Of a DNA stretch of 64,000 bases, positions 19,201 to 25,775 are shown one piece after another. Within the stretch, counting starts at the first letter, position 1. Every line of letters begins with the position of its first letter. A program made the position numbers and the translations under genes. The stretch lies in sequence record NC_048054.1. The stretch is one strand, 5' to 3'. The notes below the pieces were generated by a model. The model had not been told where the DNA came from and ran no database searches. It saw only the letters and a program-made list of their open reading frames with translations.

Positions 19201-20660
19201 TGGTTCATCTTCCTTTCACTATAGGTGATATTGATGCGAAGGTTACGCAGCGCAACATACTCCAGCACCGTGTTAGGAATGATATCCTGCACAGGACTTT
19301 CAATGTTGCAGTAGTCCACTTCTGGACGACGTACAGGCTGATCTGGATCAGTCCAGTCATACAACACACGGTCTGTAATGTCTGACAGCGCAAGACGTTT
19401 ACCAAGCAGACCAGGACGACGTTCAAACAGTTTCAGCACCGATTGTTCCAGAGTAGCCTGATTTGACTCACGCGTACCAGGAGCATCTGCATACAGCGCA
19501 ACGTTCAGCGTACAGTCAATCTGTAGCTTCTCGGGGTTCCATGATTGAACGTCAAGCGGGCTATTGAATTGAGCCAGCCACGTCAGGAACTTGTTCCATT
19601 GCGCAGAGCTTGGGTTAGGGTTGATGCCTCCCCAAGTGCTGGTGTTACGAGGCAGTACGCACACACGCACGACACCCTGCCACTCACGATCATTAGGAGC
19701 AATCTCGGCCTGACCCTGAACAACAACGTCAGCAACATCTGGATAGAGCGCGATAGCTGCTTTCCATTCATCACGGCGAATCAGCTTCTTACGGCTACGT
19801 CCTACGATTGGTGCGTAGTTACGATAGTAATCAACAGGCGTTTCATCAGAGCCGCCTACAATAGCACTGACTGTTTTGCCTTGCAGTTGTGGGTTAGACA
19901 GGCACTGCACTTTGAGGCCTGTACTGTCCGTGTTACCACTAGCGCCGAGAGACTTAATGCCCTGCACACGCAGCGTATAACCAGCTGGCGGCTGTGCGCC
20001 CCACTGCTCACCACCGAATTGAATCTCAACGTCACCTTCATCGGTTGTTACATCGAGGAAGATCTGCTGGTCAGCATATGCCTCAAACAGACACTTGGTA
20101 AAACGCTGATACTCAATACGTGTGCCAGTAGGATGTTCGAACCACACACGAATATCGTCAGTAAGCTGGAAGTTCTCTGTGCCGAGTTTAATCGACATGT
20201 AATCGACAGGCGTAGGAACAATCTGGCTGAACGTGAACACTTCACCGATGATGAAGTCAACGTTCTTCACTTCGCCTGGTTCCCACTGAGTTACTTCTGC
20301 AAGCAACGCATTGAACGTGCCGATAGTGAACGGTGTGTACTTGTCGTAGGATTGTTTTACAGAGCTTAGGTTAGCAACTGAGGCAGTAACCGTAGATACT
20401 GATTTGCGTCCGATATCCACACCAAGATAACGAGCGTTAGCAAGGATAGAAGTGTTACGGCGAGCAAGTCGGCTGAATGCTTCACGCGCCGCAATCAGTG
20501 ACGCATAGGCATTCGTTACGCCAAGATCACCAAGCGCATCAGCAAGCAACGAGGTCAATGAACTAACCTGTGCATCAGTCCAATGGCTGGAGCTGTTAAT
20601 ACGATTCAGGAAGTCTTGCGCAAACTCCTCATGAGTCGTGTAAGTGTTAAGCATGGACAT
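19197..20660 (-). CDS. Baseplate wedge protein, T4 gp6 / P2 gpJ-like
   Basis: Motifs AREAFSRLARR..ARYLG, IQFGGEQWGAQP, GGSDETPVDYYRNYAP..RRDEWKA are typical of gp6/J. Confidence 0.85.
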   Translation of the reverse strand: MSMLNTYTTHEEFAQDFLNRINSSSHWTDAQVSSLTSLLADALGDLGVTNAYASLIAAREAFSRLARRNTSILANARYLGVDIGRKSVSTVTASVANLSSVKQSYDKYTPFTIGTFNALLAEVTQWEPGEVKNVDFIIGEVFTFSQIVPTPVDYMSIKLGTENFQLTDDIRVWFEHPTGTRIEYQRFTKCLFEAYADQQIFLDVTTDEGDVEIQFGGEQWGAQPPAGYTLRVQGIKSLGASGNTDSTGLKVQCLSNPQLQGKTVSAIVGGSDETPVDYYRNYAPIVGRSRKKLIRRDEWKAAIALYPDVADVVVQGQAEIAPNDREWQGVVRVCVLPRNTSTWGGINPNPSSAQWNKFLTWLAQFNSPLDVQSWNPEKLQIDCTLNVALYADAPGTRESNQATLEQSVLKLFERRPGLLGKRLALSDITDRVLYDWTDPDQPVRRPEVDYCNIESPVQDIIPNTVLEYVALRNLRINITYSERKMNQ

Positions 20661-20822
20661 GTTACTGTGCCCTCATTGCAAACGTAATTGATTGTTGTGC
20701 ATCAGTCCAATGGCTGGAGCTGTTAATACGATTCAGGAAGTCTTGCGCAAACTCCTCATGAGTCGTGTAAGTGTTAAGCATGGACATGTTACTGTGCCCT
20801 CATTGCAAACGTAATTGATTGT
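20569..20822. repeat. Perfect 127-bp tandem duplication (20569-20695 = 20696-20822)
   Basis: Direct comparison of the sequence; spans the gp25-like stop and the J-like start. Confidence 0.95.
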
Positions 20823-21211
20823 TTGTCTTCGAGCTTAGGACAACGCCATGTGACCACGCACACGTAGGTCTGGTCAAATTGCTCGCTCGCAGTACATGCG
20901 GTTTGAACGTTAGTCACATCCTGCGTCAGACCATTGTACGGGTCTTCAAGTGCAAGGCGCATATACGTTGCAATCCAGTCGGCCGTCGTTTGATCGAACG
21001 GCTCAAAGAGATATTGATACACGTCAGCGCCGAAGTTCTCACGCCACTTACGGGATTTCTTGCGCGTACCAATTACCATCAGAATCTTTTGGACAATGCT
21101 GTCCATGTTCTGAACGTTATCACGCGGTTCGAGTTGAATCCACGCATTGATATCACAATAGATGCGCTCACTAATAGGCACATCTATCAGTCTAATTCCG
21201 ATTCCTGCCAT
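20789..21211 (-). CDS. Baseplate wedge protein, gp25/GpW-like
   Basis: SIVQKILMVIGTRKKSRKWRENFGADVYQYLFEP is the gp25 family pattern; adjacent to PAAR and J-like genes. Confidence 0.85.
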   Translation of the reverse strand: MAGIGIRLIDVPISERIYCDINAWIQLEPRDNVQNMDSIVQKILMVIGTRKKSRKWRENFGADVYQYLFEPFDQTTADWIATYMRLALEDPYNGLTQDVTNVQTACTASEQFDQTYVCVVTWRCPKLEDKQSITFAMRAQ

Positions 21212-21501
21212 CAGCCAAATCTCACGTTAGAACTACCGTTAGATGCTGTGTCGCCGCAACTGTTTGCATCGCCAGCACGTTGGGCCGGCTTACCGTTGAC
21301 ACGCACACTGGAACTAGAAGTAGCTTTACCTGTATGTGGTGGCTTCTTTGGTTTCCAGTGAGGACGATAACTATCGCCTTGGCGAACACTCCCTTTTCCA
21401 TTCACAAGCACGTTAGAAGATGCCTGTGCAGGGACAACAGGAAAATAACCGTTATGGCCTGTAGACAGATCTGTGCCTAAACGAATAGCTTTCTGACCCA
21501 T
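21211..21501 (-). CDS. PAAR-repeat spike tip protein (T4 gp5.4-like)
   Basis: AIRLGTDLSTGH, VLVNGKGSVRQGD..H, VRVNGKPAQRAGD..CG..GSSNV. Confidence 0.9.
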   Translation of the reverse strand: MGQKAIRLGTDLSTGHNGYFPVVPAQASSNVLVNGKGSVRQGDSYRPHWKPKKPPHTGKATSSSSVRVNGKPAQRAGDANSCGDTASNGSSNVRFG

Positions 21502-21502
21502 G

Positions 21503-21628
21503 TTATTTCCTCTTGTCTGAGGCTCTAGGAATTTTTGGAGCCTTTGCGGGCACGAAGGGACTCGTATCGAGTTTTCGTTTACCGTGAAGAATGTCTAAAT
21601 ACTGTTTCCAATTGGTGCAGCGGCTCAT
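21503..21628 (-). CDS. Small basic protein (41 aa, MSRCTNWKQYLDILHGKRK...)
   Basis: GAGGAG SD 6 nt upstream; TAA-C-ATG coupling to PAAR; GCTAATTT motif 23 nt upstream. Confidence 0.6.
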   Translation of the reverse strand: MSRCTNWKQYLDILHGKRKLDTSPFVPAKAPKIPRASDKRK

Positions 21629-21650
21629 GGTATTCTCCTCTGTTAGACAC

Positions 21651-21658
21651 AAATTAGC
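21651..21658 (-). promoter_or_regulatory. GCTAATTT motif, candidate late promoter for the baseplate operon
   Basis: Located between a terminator and the first gene of the operon. Confidence 0.55.
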
Positions 21659-21671
21659 TTGTTGTGCAGCA

Positions 21672-21707
21672 GAAACGAAAACGGGCGACCCGAAGGCCAC
21701 CCGTTTT
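21672..21707 (-). terminator. Rho-independent terminator closing the ncRNA-like interval
   Basis: AAAACGGGTGGCC-TTCG-GGTCGCCCGTTTT then CGTTTCT. Confidence 0.8.
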
Positions 21708-21737
21708 CTAGTGCTTGGATTTTGTGTCGTTACTCCC

Positions 21738-21896
21738 TCACACCCGAAGCGAGTGCCTATCAGCTTTCGCTGGTAAGCCGGAGTGGAAGACCGAGAGTGG
21801 AGCCGCACGCCACGGCAACAGTAAGTGACTCTCGGGCCTAGATAGCGCGTGACCAAGCAGCACAATCGCCATCAACGACACGAAGAACAAAATCAT
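21738..21896 (-). CDS. Possible 52-aa hydrophobic peptide (MILFFVSLMAIVLLGHAL...)
   Basis: AGGAG SD 5 nt upstream and an 18-aa hydrophobic N-terminus; its 3' part overlaps strong RNA hairpins. Confidence 0.35.
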   Translation of the reverse strand: MILFFVSLMAIVLLGHALSRPESHLLLPWRAAPLSVFHSGLPAKADRHSLRV

Positions 21897-21964
21897 GTTT
21901 GCTCCTGTGTCTCTCTGTAAGTAAAACATTTGCAAATGTCGATCAAGTTACTTCGAATTGCCCT

Positions 21965-22362
21965 TCGCCCAACATCACTAGGGTTTCAATTCTTTTTCTC
22001 TCTTTACCGCCTGGGTTGCGGCGAACCGCGCACAAGAACAACGCTTCAACGATACGTGGGCAGGAAGGGCACGTACCGCATTCACATCGCTCAAGCGAAG
22101 GAGGTCTCCCATCGGTGATCTGCGGTGGTTAATACACTCTTTAACAATCGCTCTTGTTGTGCATTAGATCGTGGTAGGAACGCGATTGACCGCTAACAAG
22201 TCCTATACGATATTTCACTACCCGGAAAAAGTGGGCAAGCTATGGCAGCACGTCAACGACAGCAGGCGCGGACACACTCCATTAAGCATTGTTAAGGGCA
22301 ACACTTAACAGGCTGTGAACAGCTTTGACCAAATGTAGAGTCGCTCGTCGCCCAACATCACT
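21965..22362 (-). repeat. 15-nt direct repeat AGTGATGTTGGGCGA (copies at 22348-22362 and 21965-21979)
   Basis: Exact match; both copies preceded by CAGG-NN-GTAAA(A)GAG and enclosed by different but pairing stems. Confidence 0.85.
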
Positions 22363-22957
22363 TGAGTATCTCGTCTACACTCTTTTACTCCCTGAATACC
22401 GTACAAGGAATACGGCACCCATGAGGGTCTGCGGATGTTTATCACTCTCAGACTCTTGAGCCACTATCTGGAAACTAACACGTTGAGTCGTCCGCTGGAT
22501 GACGTGTTAGCTCTCCTCTCCCCGTCGTGCGAGGGCCAGAGTGGTAGCTGATGGATTGTCATGAAGTCCTGACAGGAGTCATCGCTTCCCAATGCCCACA
22601 GAGTGAAAGTCTATGCGCATCAGGCAGCGTAGGCTGCGGTACTGCTGTCCCTATTAGATGGTCCACAACGTTGAGAATACGTTCCAACCATCTACGTGCC
22701 TAGAGGCCATTGCCGTGCCATGTCTTATGCAAGATGAAATCAAGCTGGGTCCTGGTAGACGTCAGCAGCAGAGCAATAGTCTATCACGTGGGTGCCGGGG
22801 TTGTCCTCACGATTACAGAGCGTAAACTCAAACCGGCTGGAGGCCTATGTGTTGGCAAGAACAACTCACAGGTTTATGGCTCACGGAGAGCGCCCGCTAA
22901 GTACACTCTCCGTTGATACATCTTGATATTACTATCTGCAATTTTTATTTACAGATT

Positions 22958-24721
22958 TTAGAACGCTTTACGTTCGATATTCGAATATAAAGTTTCATAC
23001 GGTTCAGAGTAAAGCTCAGGTCCACGCTGTGCGCGAATCGTCACGTAACCCGTATGACGATTGAATGCAATAATCTCGACCGTAGGCTGTTTAGGCTTGA
23101 TGGTCGCATAGATAGGAGCATTCATTGTTGGTTCGTCTGTCTGAATCTTATTTACAGATTGCAGAGCAGCACCAGAAACGTTAGGCAGATTAAAACGCAG
23201 TTCAGCGCGTTTCTGACCGAACGCAGTACGTAGCATACCTGCTTCCAGAGGAACACCATTCTGCTTGAGATATGCAGCGATACGACGGCCGATACCTGTG
23301 AGCTGGTCGCGAGTGCGTGGGTCGAATGTACCTTCGAAGCTGATTGCTTCTGACGGTTGACGTACAGACAAATGCAGGCCTGTGTTGAAGTAGCCTTCGG
23401 TCAGCAGACGCAGAATCTCTTTGACCACTTCTTTGGTGTTCGGCTTGATAGCAGCGATACGCAGTTCAGGCACGTCCACTTTCACAGGGTCACGCAGTTC
23501 GGTCTGGTTGTCCATGTAACCGAGAGATACGTGCTTTGCGTTGGTGTACGTGTGTTGCAGAACACCAGTTGCGCGAATCAGTACAGAGCCACCTTTCGCC
23601 TGATCATAAAGTTCATCGCTGGTGGTTGTGCTAAACAGGTAGTAGTCTGTAGGAACAGCCATGCGATTAACAGCTTCAATCGCTTTGGTCTGCGCTTCTT
23701 TCACAGTCGTACCGAATACAACACGGCTACGGTTAGGCTGTGCAGCAGATACAGGGAAGAACGCACCGTACACGACGCTTACGTTTTTCTTAATCGGCTT
23801 TTCAGACTGTATTTTCTTACCGCCAGTCAGCGCAGGCAGCTTGACGCCCACCAGCTTACCTTTGACGATATGTTTGTTCTCTTTAACAGGCTTGAGGCCG
23901 TCAATGAGTTTCGCCAGATCAGCACCGCTAAGAATCTTCTCCAGCGGAACAGCAAGGTTCTGCGGCAGATAGTGCTTCTTGCGGAACATGTAGATGACGG
24001 TGTCTTTCTTGATCTGCATTGGCGTAGCCATGTTGCGACCAATAACACCGACAGGCTGGAACGTGTTTGCTTTATCGTCAGCGACTGCACCGAACTGCTT
24101 GGTGAACTCAGTCTGACCGATGATGTTAGCGGCACGTAAATGACCACGAACGATAAACACGATCTTCGGTTCATCTTTCATGCGCAACTCGTAGCGGTCA
24201 CGGTTCAGATAAACCATGCTGAACTTGTCGCCCTTCTCCAGCTCCAGATCGTACTCGTCGTTAGCGTCGTCGATAACAACTTTCTTACCCTGATAGGTAG
24301 CGTACACGCGAGGACCAGCAGACTCGGAAGCAATCTGCATTGCCTGGCCAGTGTTAGACAGAGAAGCAGCAAAGTCCATGACAGCAGGCATCAGGTCGAA
24401 TGAAGATGCTACTGCATACGGCTCACGCTTCTTACCGAGCTGTACGTGGACAGCGCTACTGCTGGACATGAACACAGTATTACCTGTGTCTTCATGGGTA
24501 CCAGCGAAGTGCATACCACTAATACGTTCAATGATGTTTGCGTTAAGCGATTGGAAGTTTACTTCGCTTCCTGCGGTGAAGTCATAAATCTCACCGTTAC
24601 GCCACGCATATGCCACGTTGTTGGAGCTAAGACCCACAAAGGCATCACCCAACTGACGAATGGTCAATGGCATGATGCTCAGGTCACGAATAATCGAAGA
24701 CTGCTTTTGAATGAGGTTCAT
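22958..24721 (-). CDS. Putative virion (head) protein, 587 aa, carrying the shared ~65-aa domain
   Basis: Long ORF with typical codon use; IASESA motif followed by YQGKK..EKGDKF domain. Confidence 0.7.
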   Translation of the reverse strand: MNLIQKQSSIIRDLSIMPLTIRQLGDAFVGLSSNNVAYAWRNGEIYDFTAGSEVNFQSLNANIIERISGMHFAGTHEDTGNTVFMSSSSAVHVQLGKKREPYAVASSFDLMPAVMDFAASLSNTGQAMQIASESAGPRVYATYQGKKVVIDDANDEYDLELEKGDKFSMVYLNRDRYELRMKDEPKIVFIVRGHLRAANIIGQTEFTKQFGAVADDKANTFQPVGVIGRNMATPMQIKKDTVIYMFRKKHYLPQNLAVPLEKILSGADLAKLIDGLKPVKENKHIVKGKLVGVKLPALTGGKKIQSEKPIKKNVSVVYGAFFPVSAAQPNRSRVVFGTTVKEAQTKAIEAVNRMAVPTDYYLFSTTTSDELYDQAKGGSVLIRATGVLQHTYTNAKHVSLGYMDNQTELRDPVKVDVPELRIAAIKPNTKEVVKEILRLLTEGYFNTGLHLSVRQPSEAISFEGTFDPRTRDQLTGIGRRIAAYLKQNGVPLEAGMLRTAFGQKRAELRFNLPNVSGAALQSVNKIQTDEPTMNAPIYATIKPKQPTVEIIAFNRHTGYVTIRAQRGPELYSEPYETLYSNIERKAF

Positions 24722-24729
24722 ATAAATCC

Positions 24730-25164
24730 CTAATACGAAACAATGCGGAAGGCGTTCTGCTTGAGCAGATTGAGGTTACCAAGCATCAGGCTATAAGCCA
24801 GAGTGCCATGATGTTCGATCAGATCATCAGGTACGATTGACCCGAAGTACAGGGCCTTATCTGGTCGAGCATTGATTTCCTCTCCAACAGACTTCATTGC
24901 GTCAGGGACAACGAAGCACCATGGTTCAGCAATATACTTGCCTTTGACGTACTGAATCCTATAGCCAACAGCCATGTGCTGGCCTTTGGTAGGGCGGTAC
25001 GCGAAAACATCCGTGTTCTGGTTGCGAGACTTCCTCACAGAGAACAGCGCCATAGTAAGGAAGCGCTGTTCAAACTGTGGGATGAATGCGTTGTCTTCGC
25101 AAATCTTTTTAAGTACCGCCTCTTGTCGAGCACGAGGCATCGACGCGTAGAGGTTTAAATTCAT
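24730..25164 (-). CDS. Hypothetical protein (144 aa)
   Basis: ATGA-coupled to tmk; GGA-containing SD-type spacing to the next gene. Confidence 0.75.
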   Translation of the reverse strand: MNLNLYASMPRARQEAVLKKICEDNAFIPQFEQRFLTMALFSVRKSRNQNTDVFAYRPTKGQHMAVGYRIQYVKGKYIAEPWCFVVPDAMKSVGEEINARPDKALYFGSIVPDDLIEHHGTLAYSLMLGNLNLLKQNAFRIVSY

Positions 25165-25775
25165 GACAGCTTGGCGAGAATTTGACGAACAACATCGGAC
25201 ACCGAATTAACCTCAGTGTCGATAACCAAATCAAAGCCGCCAGGCACTTCGAGATAGCGTTGGTTGTATTGCTCAAACACTTCTTTGGTCTGACGCTTTT
25301 CGATACGGTCTTCACCGCCGATGCGAATCTTCCGACGCTCAACAGACGTTTCATAGCCACACGTCAGCAACACGGTCAGACGATTCTCAGGAGCAAGCGC
25401 TTCCCAAGTATGCTGATAGATGTGTGCGTTAACGTCCGACTCACCCGCCTGATAAACGTAAGTGGAAGGATAGCCGCGATCAGCAATAATGATCGTGTCT
25501 GGTTCGTTGGCGAGAATGCGCTCATACGCAGTCATCGTTGAAGAACGTGCAGCAAGGAAGAGCAGCAGTTCGGTACGCGGGTCCATACCCTCGTTAAGAG
25601 GATTTGAATTGGACAGCAGAACATCACGAATGTGTTCGGCAAGCGGCGTACCACCAGGCTCACGTAAGCGCAGAGTCTTCGCGCCACGCTGCGTCAGTAT
25701 TTCAGACAGAGCAGTACACACAGTAGATTTGCCGCTACCTTCGGGGCCTTCGACTAAGAGATAGGTTGAGTTCAT
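25161..25775 (-). CDS. tmk: Thymidylate kinase
   Basis: P-loop EGPEGSGKST, LREPGGTPLAEHIR, ELLLFLAAR, IADRGYPSTYVYQ. Confidence 0.95.
   Translation of the reverse strand: MNSTYLLVEGPEGSGKSTVCTALSEILTQRGAKTLRLREPGGTPLAEHIRDVLLSNSNPLNEGMDPRTELLLFLAARSSTMTAYERILANEPDTIIIADRGYPSTYVYQAGESDVNAHIYQHTWEALAPENRLTVLLTCGYETSVERRKIRIGGEDRIEKRQTKEVFEQYNQRYLEVPGGFDLVIDTEVNSVSDVVRQILAKLS

Follow-up and report, generated by a model that had tools for sequence, protein, structure and literature searches.

Paired hairpin arms of a predicted large structured RNA in Dickeya and Erwinia jumbo phages

A repeated loop in an unannotated stretch

What could be the role of a loop of 15 nucleotides (nt) that is repeated exactly, on two different stems, in a part of a phage genome where no gene has been annotated? 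The question is posed by Dickeya phage vB_DsoM_AD1 (AD1), a jumbo phage of the genus Alexandravirus with a genome of 261,658 bp, from which a stretch of 64,000 nt (the window, record NC_048054.1) was analysed. The original prediction for this locus was that two hairpins sharing the loop are repeated RNA modules under structural selection, with the geometry of a kink-turn or K-loop and a likeness to box C; the part concerning selection on RNA structure stood, and the assignment to kink-turn, K-loop or box C did not. The two hairpins are best described as paralogous recognition hairpins in a new family of large structured RNAs of Dickeya and Erwinia jumbo phages.

The hairpins lie in a stretch of 1,456 nt of AD1 that carries no annotated gene. 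The loop sequence as originally written, AGTGATGTTGGGCGA, reads on the minus strand, where all genes neighbouring the stretch are also located, although the coordinates first given for it were those of the plus strand. It is present in exactly two copies (window 22362-22348 and 21979-21965) with a spacing of 383 nt. The same two matches were the only ones in the 64 kb when up to two mismatches were allowed (0.21 expected from shuffled sequences), and there is no further copy in the complete AD1 genome; exact searches of window and genome thus bear out the proposed duplication. The closing stems were also as described, namely GAATTG-AAA-CCCT/AGGG-CAATTC for copy 2 and GTGTAGA..CTC/GAG..TCTACAT for copy 1, and the element CAGG-NN-GTAAA(A)GAG precedes both copies (CAGGGAGTAAAAGAG at 22394-22380 and CAGGCGGTAAAGAGAG at 22013-21998). 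A further GGGAGTAA noted near 21730 was located at 21737-21730, or 21738-21730 with the leading (A).

Compensatory evolution of the hairpin stems

Copy 1 (22332-22381, minus strand) is made up of an outer stem, CG/CG pairs, an A(G)AUA bulge and an inner stem CUC(A)/(C)GAG, which carries the loop AGUGAUGUUGGGCGA at 22348-22362. Copy 2 (21955-21992, minus strand) has an outer stem GAAUUG/CAAUUC, an AAA bulge, an inner stem CCCU/AGGG and a loop at 21965-21979 that in AD1 is the same as that of copy 1; both loops were delimited by the exact repeat search. In an alignment of 13 homologs (A2), 92.2% of the cells of the copy 2 stem hold standard pairs and eight of its ten pairs have changed on both sides. 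None of 500 shuffled alignments matched the observed pairing or covariation score, and sliding the 3′ partner by one to three columns left only 30-41% pairing. The stem of copy 1 was tested in 12 homologs (A3), with phage Y3 omitted because its copy 1 is of a different sequence type; 96.1% of the cells are paired, 8 of 13 pairs show two-sided changes, none of 500 shuffles did as well, and the signal breaks down once the partner is slid. The compensations extend to the inner stem, where CUC/GAG is replaced by CCC/GGG and CCCU/AGGG by CCAU/AUGG, and the pair that closes the 15-nt loop alternates among U-A, A-U and A.C. Conservation of the stems in homologs, on which the original prediction was said to depend, was therefore found in 12-13 of them, and as judged from these alignments both hairpins are maintained by compensatory evolution at the RNA level.

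The relationship between the two hairpins is apparent from a covariance model trained on copy 2 alone (R1), which recovers copy 1 in every locus of the Alexandravirus type with 32-37 bits (E of about 1e-6 to 1e-7). There are exactly two matches per locus; the AD1 copy 2 scores 64.5 bits, and everything else in the 64-kb window stays at or below 9.5 bits. Together with the covariation of the stems, this recovery supports the claim that repeated RNA modules are under structural selection. In the copy 1 loops of 14 Alexandravirus-like sequences only positions 6 (U/A) and 9 (U/C) vary, and in the copy 2 loops of relatives positions 5-10, 12 and 14 vary. The loops drift independently from phage to phage while one consensus is kept (in SNUABM_1, for example, GAUGUU of copy 1 stands against GAAGUC of copy 2), which argues for a shared constraint and not for gene conversion. 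A scan of IMG/VR for the exact 15-mer gave mostly single chance matches, and the real ones were jumbo-phage contigs and one fragment (L015). An alternative pairing of copy 1 proposed by RNAalifold (CUCAA/UUGGG) was rejected as contradicted by copy 2 of SNUABM_17 (CCAU/AUGG) and copy 2 of SNUABM_35.

Two domains with a common layout

Each hairpin is the third arm (P3) of a larger domain, in which a closing helix (P1), a long helix with an A/GG internal loop (P2) and an A-rich joiner precede the module. Domain A (22327-22429, minus strand) resembles a three-way junction and is delimited by the covariation of its P1 and P2. Its P1 pairs GACC (22429-22426) with GGUC (22330-22327) and covaries to GGUC/GACC and GGCC/GGCC; its P2 (22425-22413 with 22401-22388) pairs CUC-A-UGGG... 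with ...UUCA-GG-GAG around the A/GG internal loop and also covaries; its joiner is UAAAAGAG and its P3 is copy 1. Domain B (21941-22120, minus strand) comprises 46 predicted pairs, of which 26 have changed on both sides. Its P2 joins ACCG-A-UGGG (22116-22108) to CCCA-GG-CGGU (22015-22006), with GC pairs changed to AU or CG in 5-7 sequences. Domain B also contains a long inserted branch, a GCGG/CCGC hairpin, an A-rich joiner and copy 2 as its P3; its GAUC/GAUC closing helix is a prediction. The three-arm layout recurs in single-sequence folds of AD1 domain A and of the second domains of SNUABM_5 and Yoloswag.

This layout gives a place to the CAGG-NN-GTAAA element, which is the 3′ strand of a covarying helix and not a free-standing box. 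On the minus strand, CAGGGAGUAAAAGAG (22380-22394) is the 3′ strand of P2 of domain A with its joiner, and CAGGCGGUAAAGAGAG (21998-22013) is the covarying counterpart in domain B. The third occurrence, AGGGAGUAA (21730-21738, minus strand), belongs to the 3′ strand of another helix, ACUCC (21784-21780) with GGAGU (21736-21732), in which three of the five base pairs have two-sided changes. No third module was found after the GGGAGTAA near 21730 by either R1 or R2, a second covariance model described below. Ahead of each module, in all lineages, stands an upstream word AGUG..AAC..CCGCAG.

Two words of the 3′ end of 16S rRNA, the anti-Shine-Dalgarno region, were observed 8 nt apart in a single-stranded part of domain B (GAUCACC and ACCUCCUU, window 22098-22120, minus strand). 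They are invariant in 12 Alexandravirus-like homologs and absent from Y3.

Deeper relatives and natural variants of the module

A search with the neighbouring protein AD1_115 reaches Yoloswagvirus, Rivsvirus (SNUABM_5), Salmondvirus (JA11, JA29 and JA33) and one Yersinia phage. The four deeper relatives that were fetched have the same gene order with long unannotated gaps, and conserved blocks in these are picked out by a profile of the AD1-type unit. The module of these lineages consists of an outer stem, an AGA (once AUA) bulge, an inner stem of 8 bp (CCU...GGG) and a hexaloop A-G/A-N-N-G-G, observed as AGUGGG, AGUUGG, AGAGGG, AGAUGG and AAUGGG. Two such modules are present per locus in Yoloswag, SNUABM_5, JA29 and Y3 and one in JA33, and IMG/VR places the hexaloop-type pattern in this phage clade only. 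When eight hexaloop modules were aligned, 90.8% of the cells were paired and all seven outer-stem pairs showed two-sided changes, a result reached by none of 500 shuffles. The paired sequence of the inner stem is fixed (ACCU..CGGG), with an invariant U.G.

The two forms of the module are connected by phage Y3. A covariance model trained on the eight hexaloop modules (R2), with Y3 copy 2 outside the training set, finds that copy with 21.2 bits (E 3e-4), and R1 finds it with 36.4 bits; being recognised by both of these independent models, it links the two module types. The best match of R2 in the whole AD1 window is copy 2. Across six genus-level lineages the module may be summarised as an outer stem, a 3-nt A-R-A bulge, an inner stem and an (A/U)-G-N-N-G-G cap. 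The family-wide conserved positions are the bulge and the A and G..GG of the loop, and the two middle loop positions vary even between JA29 and JA33. By this comparison the 15-nt loop of AD1 is an upper inner stem remodelled to AGUGA/GCGA plus a hexaloop core (U/A)GU(U/C)GG: the upper four base pairs have been replaced in Alexandravirus by the non-Watson-Crick AGUGA/GCGA, which gives the loop an apparent length of 15 nt. The module is also older than the AD1 sequence suggests.

Several relatives amount to natural variants of the arrangement. In the uncultivated viral genome (UViG) 3300013825, represented by two contigs that overlap inside the RNA (L077:5380-5460 and L015:177-220), the copy 1 arm has been swapped for a GAAA-capped and a UUCG-capped hairpin, and copy 2 retains the 15-nt loop on a new compensatory outer stem. 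JA33 (L081) lacks about 270 nt that in JA29 (L082) hold the first domain and its module, so that module copy number is one or two within a single genus. In Yoloswag, the boundary element AATCTGTAAATA... occurs twice, at the start of the RNA (L079:4823) and directly before the homolog of a small open reading frame (ORF) that in AD1 follows the RNA (L079:6302), with three ORFs between; the RNA and the small ORF are thus separable units there. The order of conserved blocks was observed to differ between RNAs of the AD1 type and those of the Yoloswag/JA type.

The kink-turn question

The Alexandravirus form of the module has a likeness to kink-turns such as Kt-7, the 5′ stem-loop of U4 snRNA and the box C/D motif, in that its order is stem, three unpaired nucleotides, GA ... 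GA, stem. Were the 15-nt loop to fold as a kink-turn, the closing stem would be the canonical (C) helix, AGU the 3-nt bulge, G4.A15 and A5.G14 the tandem sheared pairs and the remainder a short capped non-canonical (NC) element, and the fold would bend the arm or recruit a kink-turn-binding protein. The polarity is compatible with this in Alexandravirus; in both copies of 14 sequences G4 and A15 never vary and A5 hardly does; and position 14 changes only from G to A, the A at the 2n position being a documented natural variant of kink-turns (PMC3985660). Nevertheless, the variation fits two other registers equally well, one with U3.G14 and G4-C13 (G14 to A giving U-A) and one with G2-C13 and U3.G12 (G12 to A giving U-A), and copy 1 has an A.C mismatch at what would be the closing pair of the C helix. 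The NC helix is missing from the AD1-type module: once the putative G.A/A.G pairs are in place, no more than a single Watson-Crick pair (G7-C13) can follow and the rest is apical loop. In five sister lineages (Y3, with both of its copies, Yoloswag, SNUABM_5, JA29 and JA33), the positions homologous to the GA/AG tandem are ordinary Watson-Crick pairs of a plain helix topped by an AGNNGG hexaloop.

The related assignments fare no better. A K-loop is a kink-turn in which the C helix is replaced by a loop and the NC helix is kept (PMC3884654); here the polarity is opposite, since the 3-nt bulge and A15 sit next to the closing stem, which would be the C helix, and the module is by definition not a K-loop. 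Neither the consensus of box C (RUGAUGA) nor that of box D (CUGA) is matched by the loop sequences GUGAUGU and GCGA, and among the C/D families of Rfam none matched the AD1 region at E <= 10. A search for the L7Ae family (PF01248) gave no match at E <= 1 in the 99%-complete phage genome, the Dickeya host not having been searched; the same model matches 8 of 14 control genomes, E. coli not among them, so that such a protein was found in neither the phage nor the E. coli control. A kink-turn is probably not the identity of the module and is not supported as its conserved feature; as a lineage-specific elaboration in Alexandravirus it is an improbable one.

The predicted transcription unit

The hairpins fall within a predicted transcription unit (21677-22940, minus strand; the 5′ end is a prediction) composed of about 1.04 kb of noncoding structured RNA, the small ORF and a terminator. 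RNAalifold predicted helices along the whole unit in 13 homologs, about 25 of them with two-sided compensatory changes, and neither codon periodicity nor a conserved ORF was detected in the first ~1,040 nt of the unit (upstream of 21900). There were no matches to Rfam 15 at the gathering score in the window, and at E <= 10 only chance-level matches were obtained in the unit and four distant loci; the families tested included GOLLD, ROOL, group I and II introns, RNase P, tmRNA and riboswitches. No paper describing this phage RNA of about 1.25 kb was found in the literature.

The 5′ edge of the unit is marked by a promoter-like motif, ATCTGTAAATA (22946-22956, minus strand), which follows the AD1_115 stop codon directly and does not vary among 13 homologs. 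The AD1 genome contains 15 exact sites and 32 with one mismatch, compared to one or two for a reversed control. Among 24 sites of the form NTCTGTAAATA, 71% have the next gene start of the same strand no more than 150 nt downstream, at a median of 37 nt (10% for random positions), and 58% are in noncoding DNA (7% for random positions). From the unit's own ATCTGTAAATA site, in contrast, a gene-sized ORF is not reached for more than 1 kb. On this distribution NTCTGTAAATA is a candidate promoter of AD1-like phages; it resembles what we take to be the T4 late TATAAATA box. It was also observed at window 23149-23159 (minus strand), and it is strongly over-represented and strand-consistent genome-wide.

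At the other end, the small unannotated ORF (21738-21896, minus strand) has 52 codons, an N-terminal hydrophobic helix and an AGGAG ribosome-binding site. All 13 homologs keep this frame open, with 47-52 codons and a common stop position; it is annotated in some relatives and probably encodes a real small membrane protein. Its 3′ half was observed to overlap covarying RNA hairpins. The unit ends in an intrinsic terminator (21677-21708, minus strand) with a 14-bp stem, a UUCG loop and a U tract, which is conserved with compensatory changes and was detected in JA29 and JA33 as well. Transcription of the unit is predicted from its promoter-like motif, its terminator and covariation of the kind seen in RNA.

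Partners and roles of the modules

The best explanation of the two copies, offered tentatively and with a little less than even confidence, is that they are twin P3 hairpin arms of a large RNA that most likely dock to RNA. The copies would be the paralogous P3 arms of two tandem multi-helix domains in one large structured RNA, headed by the phage promoter-like site and ended by the intrinsic terminator. The bulge and the fixed A and G..GG of the loop would form a docking surface, by which both copies would offer themselves to the same kind of partner. If the partner is RNA, a tertiary or quaternary contact might lock both domains in place as the large RNA folds or assembles, and the modules would then be peripheral stabilising elements and not the functional core. 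A peripheral role would explain how one copy could be swapped for GAAA- and UUCG-capped hairpins or lost in some lineages, since peripheral stabilising elements of large RNAs behave in this way, and the position of the modules as arms of junction domains in a heavily structured RNA speaks for an RNA contact. A broader form of the proposal is possible, though on the doubtful side: the modules would be docking elements of an undescribed class of giant RNAs (about 1-1.25 kb), their identical loops mediating RNA assembly or recruiting a virion or host protein, and the RNA would be a functional ribonucleoprotein or a self-assembling particle, not a leader. The class would comprise phages of the genera Alexandravirus, Sasquatchvirus, Yoloswagvirus, Rivsvirus and Salmondvirus, with its locus in the baseplate gene block.

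Several results count against docking to RNA as the explanation. No conserved Watson-Crick complement to the loop was found, the only complements being G.U-rich ones to invariant segments; the variable loop positions show no covariation with any column above the chance level, one matching helix pair being about what chance predicts; nothing elsewhere compensates for the loop difference between JA29 and JA33; and no T-loop-like receptor hairpin is conserved. The fixed inner-stem sequence (ACCU..CGGG with its invariant U.G), the bulge and the hexaloop are equally typical of protein-binding hairpins. The match of R2 to AD1 copy 2 has, taken by itself, an E of only 0.24. The duplication likely extends to the upstream AGUG..AAC..CCGCAG element, but a hidden Markov model using sequence only was not significant (domain B model on the domain A element, E = 8.8), so the extended duplication rests on the structural parallel and the recurrence in distant lineages. 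As to transcription, metatranscriptome contigs from relatives span the flanking genes as well as the unit region, and one run (X18; window 19600-25400) holds a 124-kb contig of a related jumbo phage, which together indicate that phage DNA is present in those RNA libraries.

The negative searches for an RNA partner favour a protein instead. The hairpins might be twin operators for one protein, probably a dimer, encoded by phage or host, which would read the A-R-A bulge, the conserved inner stem and the AG..GG loop, with the large RNA as a scaffold, sponge or ribonucleoprotein component. In support of this, the inner stem is fixed in sequence, including its U.G, beyond what pairing needs; the stems drift beneath an AD1-type loop that hardly varies; the loops of the two copies drift independently within one consensus; two copies would suit a dimer; and the 3-nt bulge with a hexaloop is presumably like the PP7 operator and HIV TAR. 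On the other hand, no candidate protein was found, L7Ae is lacking, and AD1_115, which is always adjacent, has no informative match; JA33 manages with a single copy, UViG 3300013825 has exchanged one copy for tetraloop hairpins, and the modules are set within an elaborate RNA fold and not in a simple array. Twin operators are a possible but rather doubtful reading, and docking to RNA is considered slightly more likely than recognition by a protein. A cis-acting role is less probable still: it is quite unlikely that the RNA is a giant leader, with the modules as sensor or folding elements, that controls how the small membrane-protein ORF or the baseplate genes further downstream are translated or how stable their message is. 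Such a leader would account for the conserved ORF with a ribosome-binding site in the same promoter-to-terminator unit and for the conserved ACCUCCUU in domain B, which is complementary to ribosome-binding sites of the AGGAG type. A length of about 1 kb with some 25 covarying helices is far beyond known leaders, however; the leaders at other promoter-like sites are about 20-45 nt, and the small ORF of Yoloswag has its own promoter-like element, three ORFs away from the RNA. That the repeats are sites at the DNA level, either footprints of proteins on double-stranded DNA or recombination sites, is hardly credible. In its favour, the 15-mer is repeated exactly and the 5′ boundary element contains an inverted repeat; against it, the compensatory substitutions of the stems, including G.U pairs, preserve RNA pairing and not DNA sequence, and both copies share the strand on which the neighbouring genes are transcribed.

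Mimicry of cellular RNAs was considered and rejected. The module aligned to E. coli rrsB (16S rRNA, h35-h37) with a score of 20, compared to a mean of 19.7 for shuffled sequences, 144 of 300 of which scored at least as high; the whole RNA scored 28 against a shuffled mean of 28.2, so there is no similarity above chance. The module loop A-G-N-N-G-G flanked by CUC..GAG is reminiscent of the tRNA D-arm (A14-R15-N-N-G18-G19), from which it differs in having 6 nt, two fewer, and no equivalent of A21. Mimicry of the D-arm and docking of D-loop to T-loop type were discarded, as no tRNA model matches and no T-loop-like hairpin is conserved. ARAGORN found no tRNA in the window, RF00005 gave no match at E <= 10 in the whole 262-kb AD1 genome, and none was found in the related loci.

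Comparison with known RNAs

GOLLD and ROOL are large structured RNAs of phages and prophages, of unknown function, for whose conserved loops no partners are known from sequence. The AD1 RNA is likewise very large, elaborately folded and encoded by a phage, with loop partners that are not evident; it differs in being longer (about 1.0-1.25 kb), in belonging to Dickeya and Erwinia jumbo phages, in its location in a baseplate gene block and in ending with a small ORF. The hairpins taken singly have what we presume to be the design of the PP7 coat-protein operator and HIV-1 TAR, a small purine-rich bulge a few base pairs below a loop of six nucleotides, with bulge and loop conserved except for two loop positions that are free to vary. 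In contrast to those, they are arms of a large RNA, they have no sequence match to either, and no levivirus coat protein or Tat-like protein is known in AD1. The serial arrangement of two homologous junction domains, with joiner and arm kept in each, parallels the tandem glycine riboswitch, although no match to a riboswitch family was obtained, 100-180 nt separate the domains within a much larger RNA and no ligand is implied.

Very large structured noncoding RNAs are rare and mostly unexplained in function, and this one is unusually rich in covariation. Its internal tandem duplication presents two copies of one recognition hairpin, and the relatives with a remodelled loop, an arm swapped for tetraloops or a deleted domain are ready-made mutants. 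The modules, being short and defined, are handles by which the function of the whole RNA becomes experimentally approachable. Dickeya solani and Erwinia amylovora are the hosts of these phages, which makes them biocontrol candidates; an RNA that has gone unannotated among their structural genes therefore matters for both annotation and understanding.

Neighbouring genes and minor features

The unannotated gap is syntenic in every relative fetched and measures 1.27-1.45 kb. In AD1 it is bordered on one side by AD1_115 and on the other by genes for a PAAR spike, gp25 and the baseplate wedge. AD1_115 has 587 amino acids and KMPT-N is its sole recognised domain; no informative match to it was found among PDB sequences, in NCBIfam or in the ESM Atlas.

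Between copy 2 and the ribosome-binding site of the small ORF is a perfect palindrome of 14 nt, ACATTTGCAAATGT (approximately 21922-21935, minus strand), which the AD1 subgroup has and the Alexandra subgroup lacks. An ORF of 41 codons (21503-21628, minus strand) between the terminator and the PAAR gene is present only in AD1, 2910A and SNUABM_3, and in the other relatives a conserved AAGCTAATTTGTG..GAGGAG element is followed directly by the PAAR gene.

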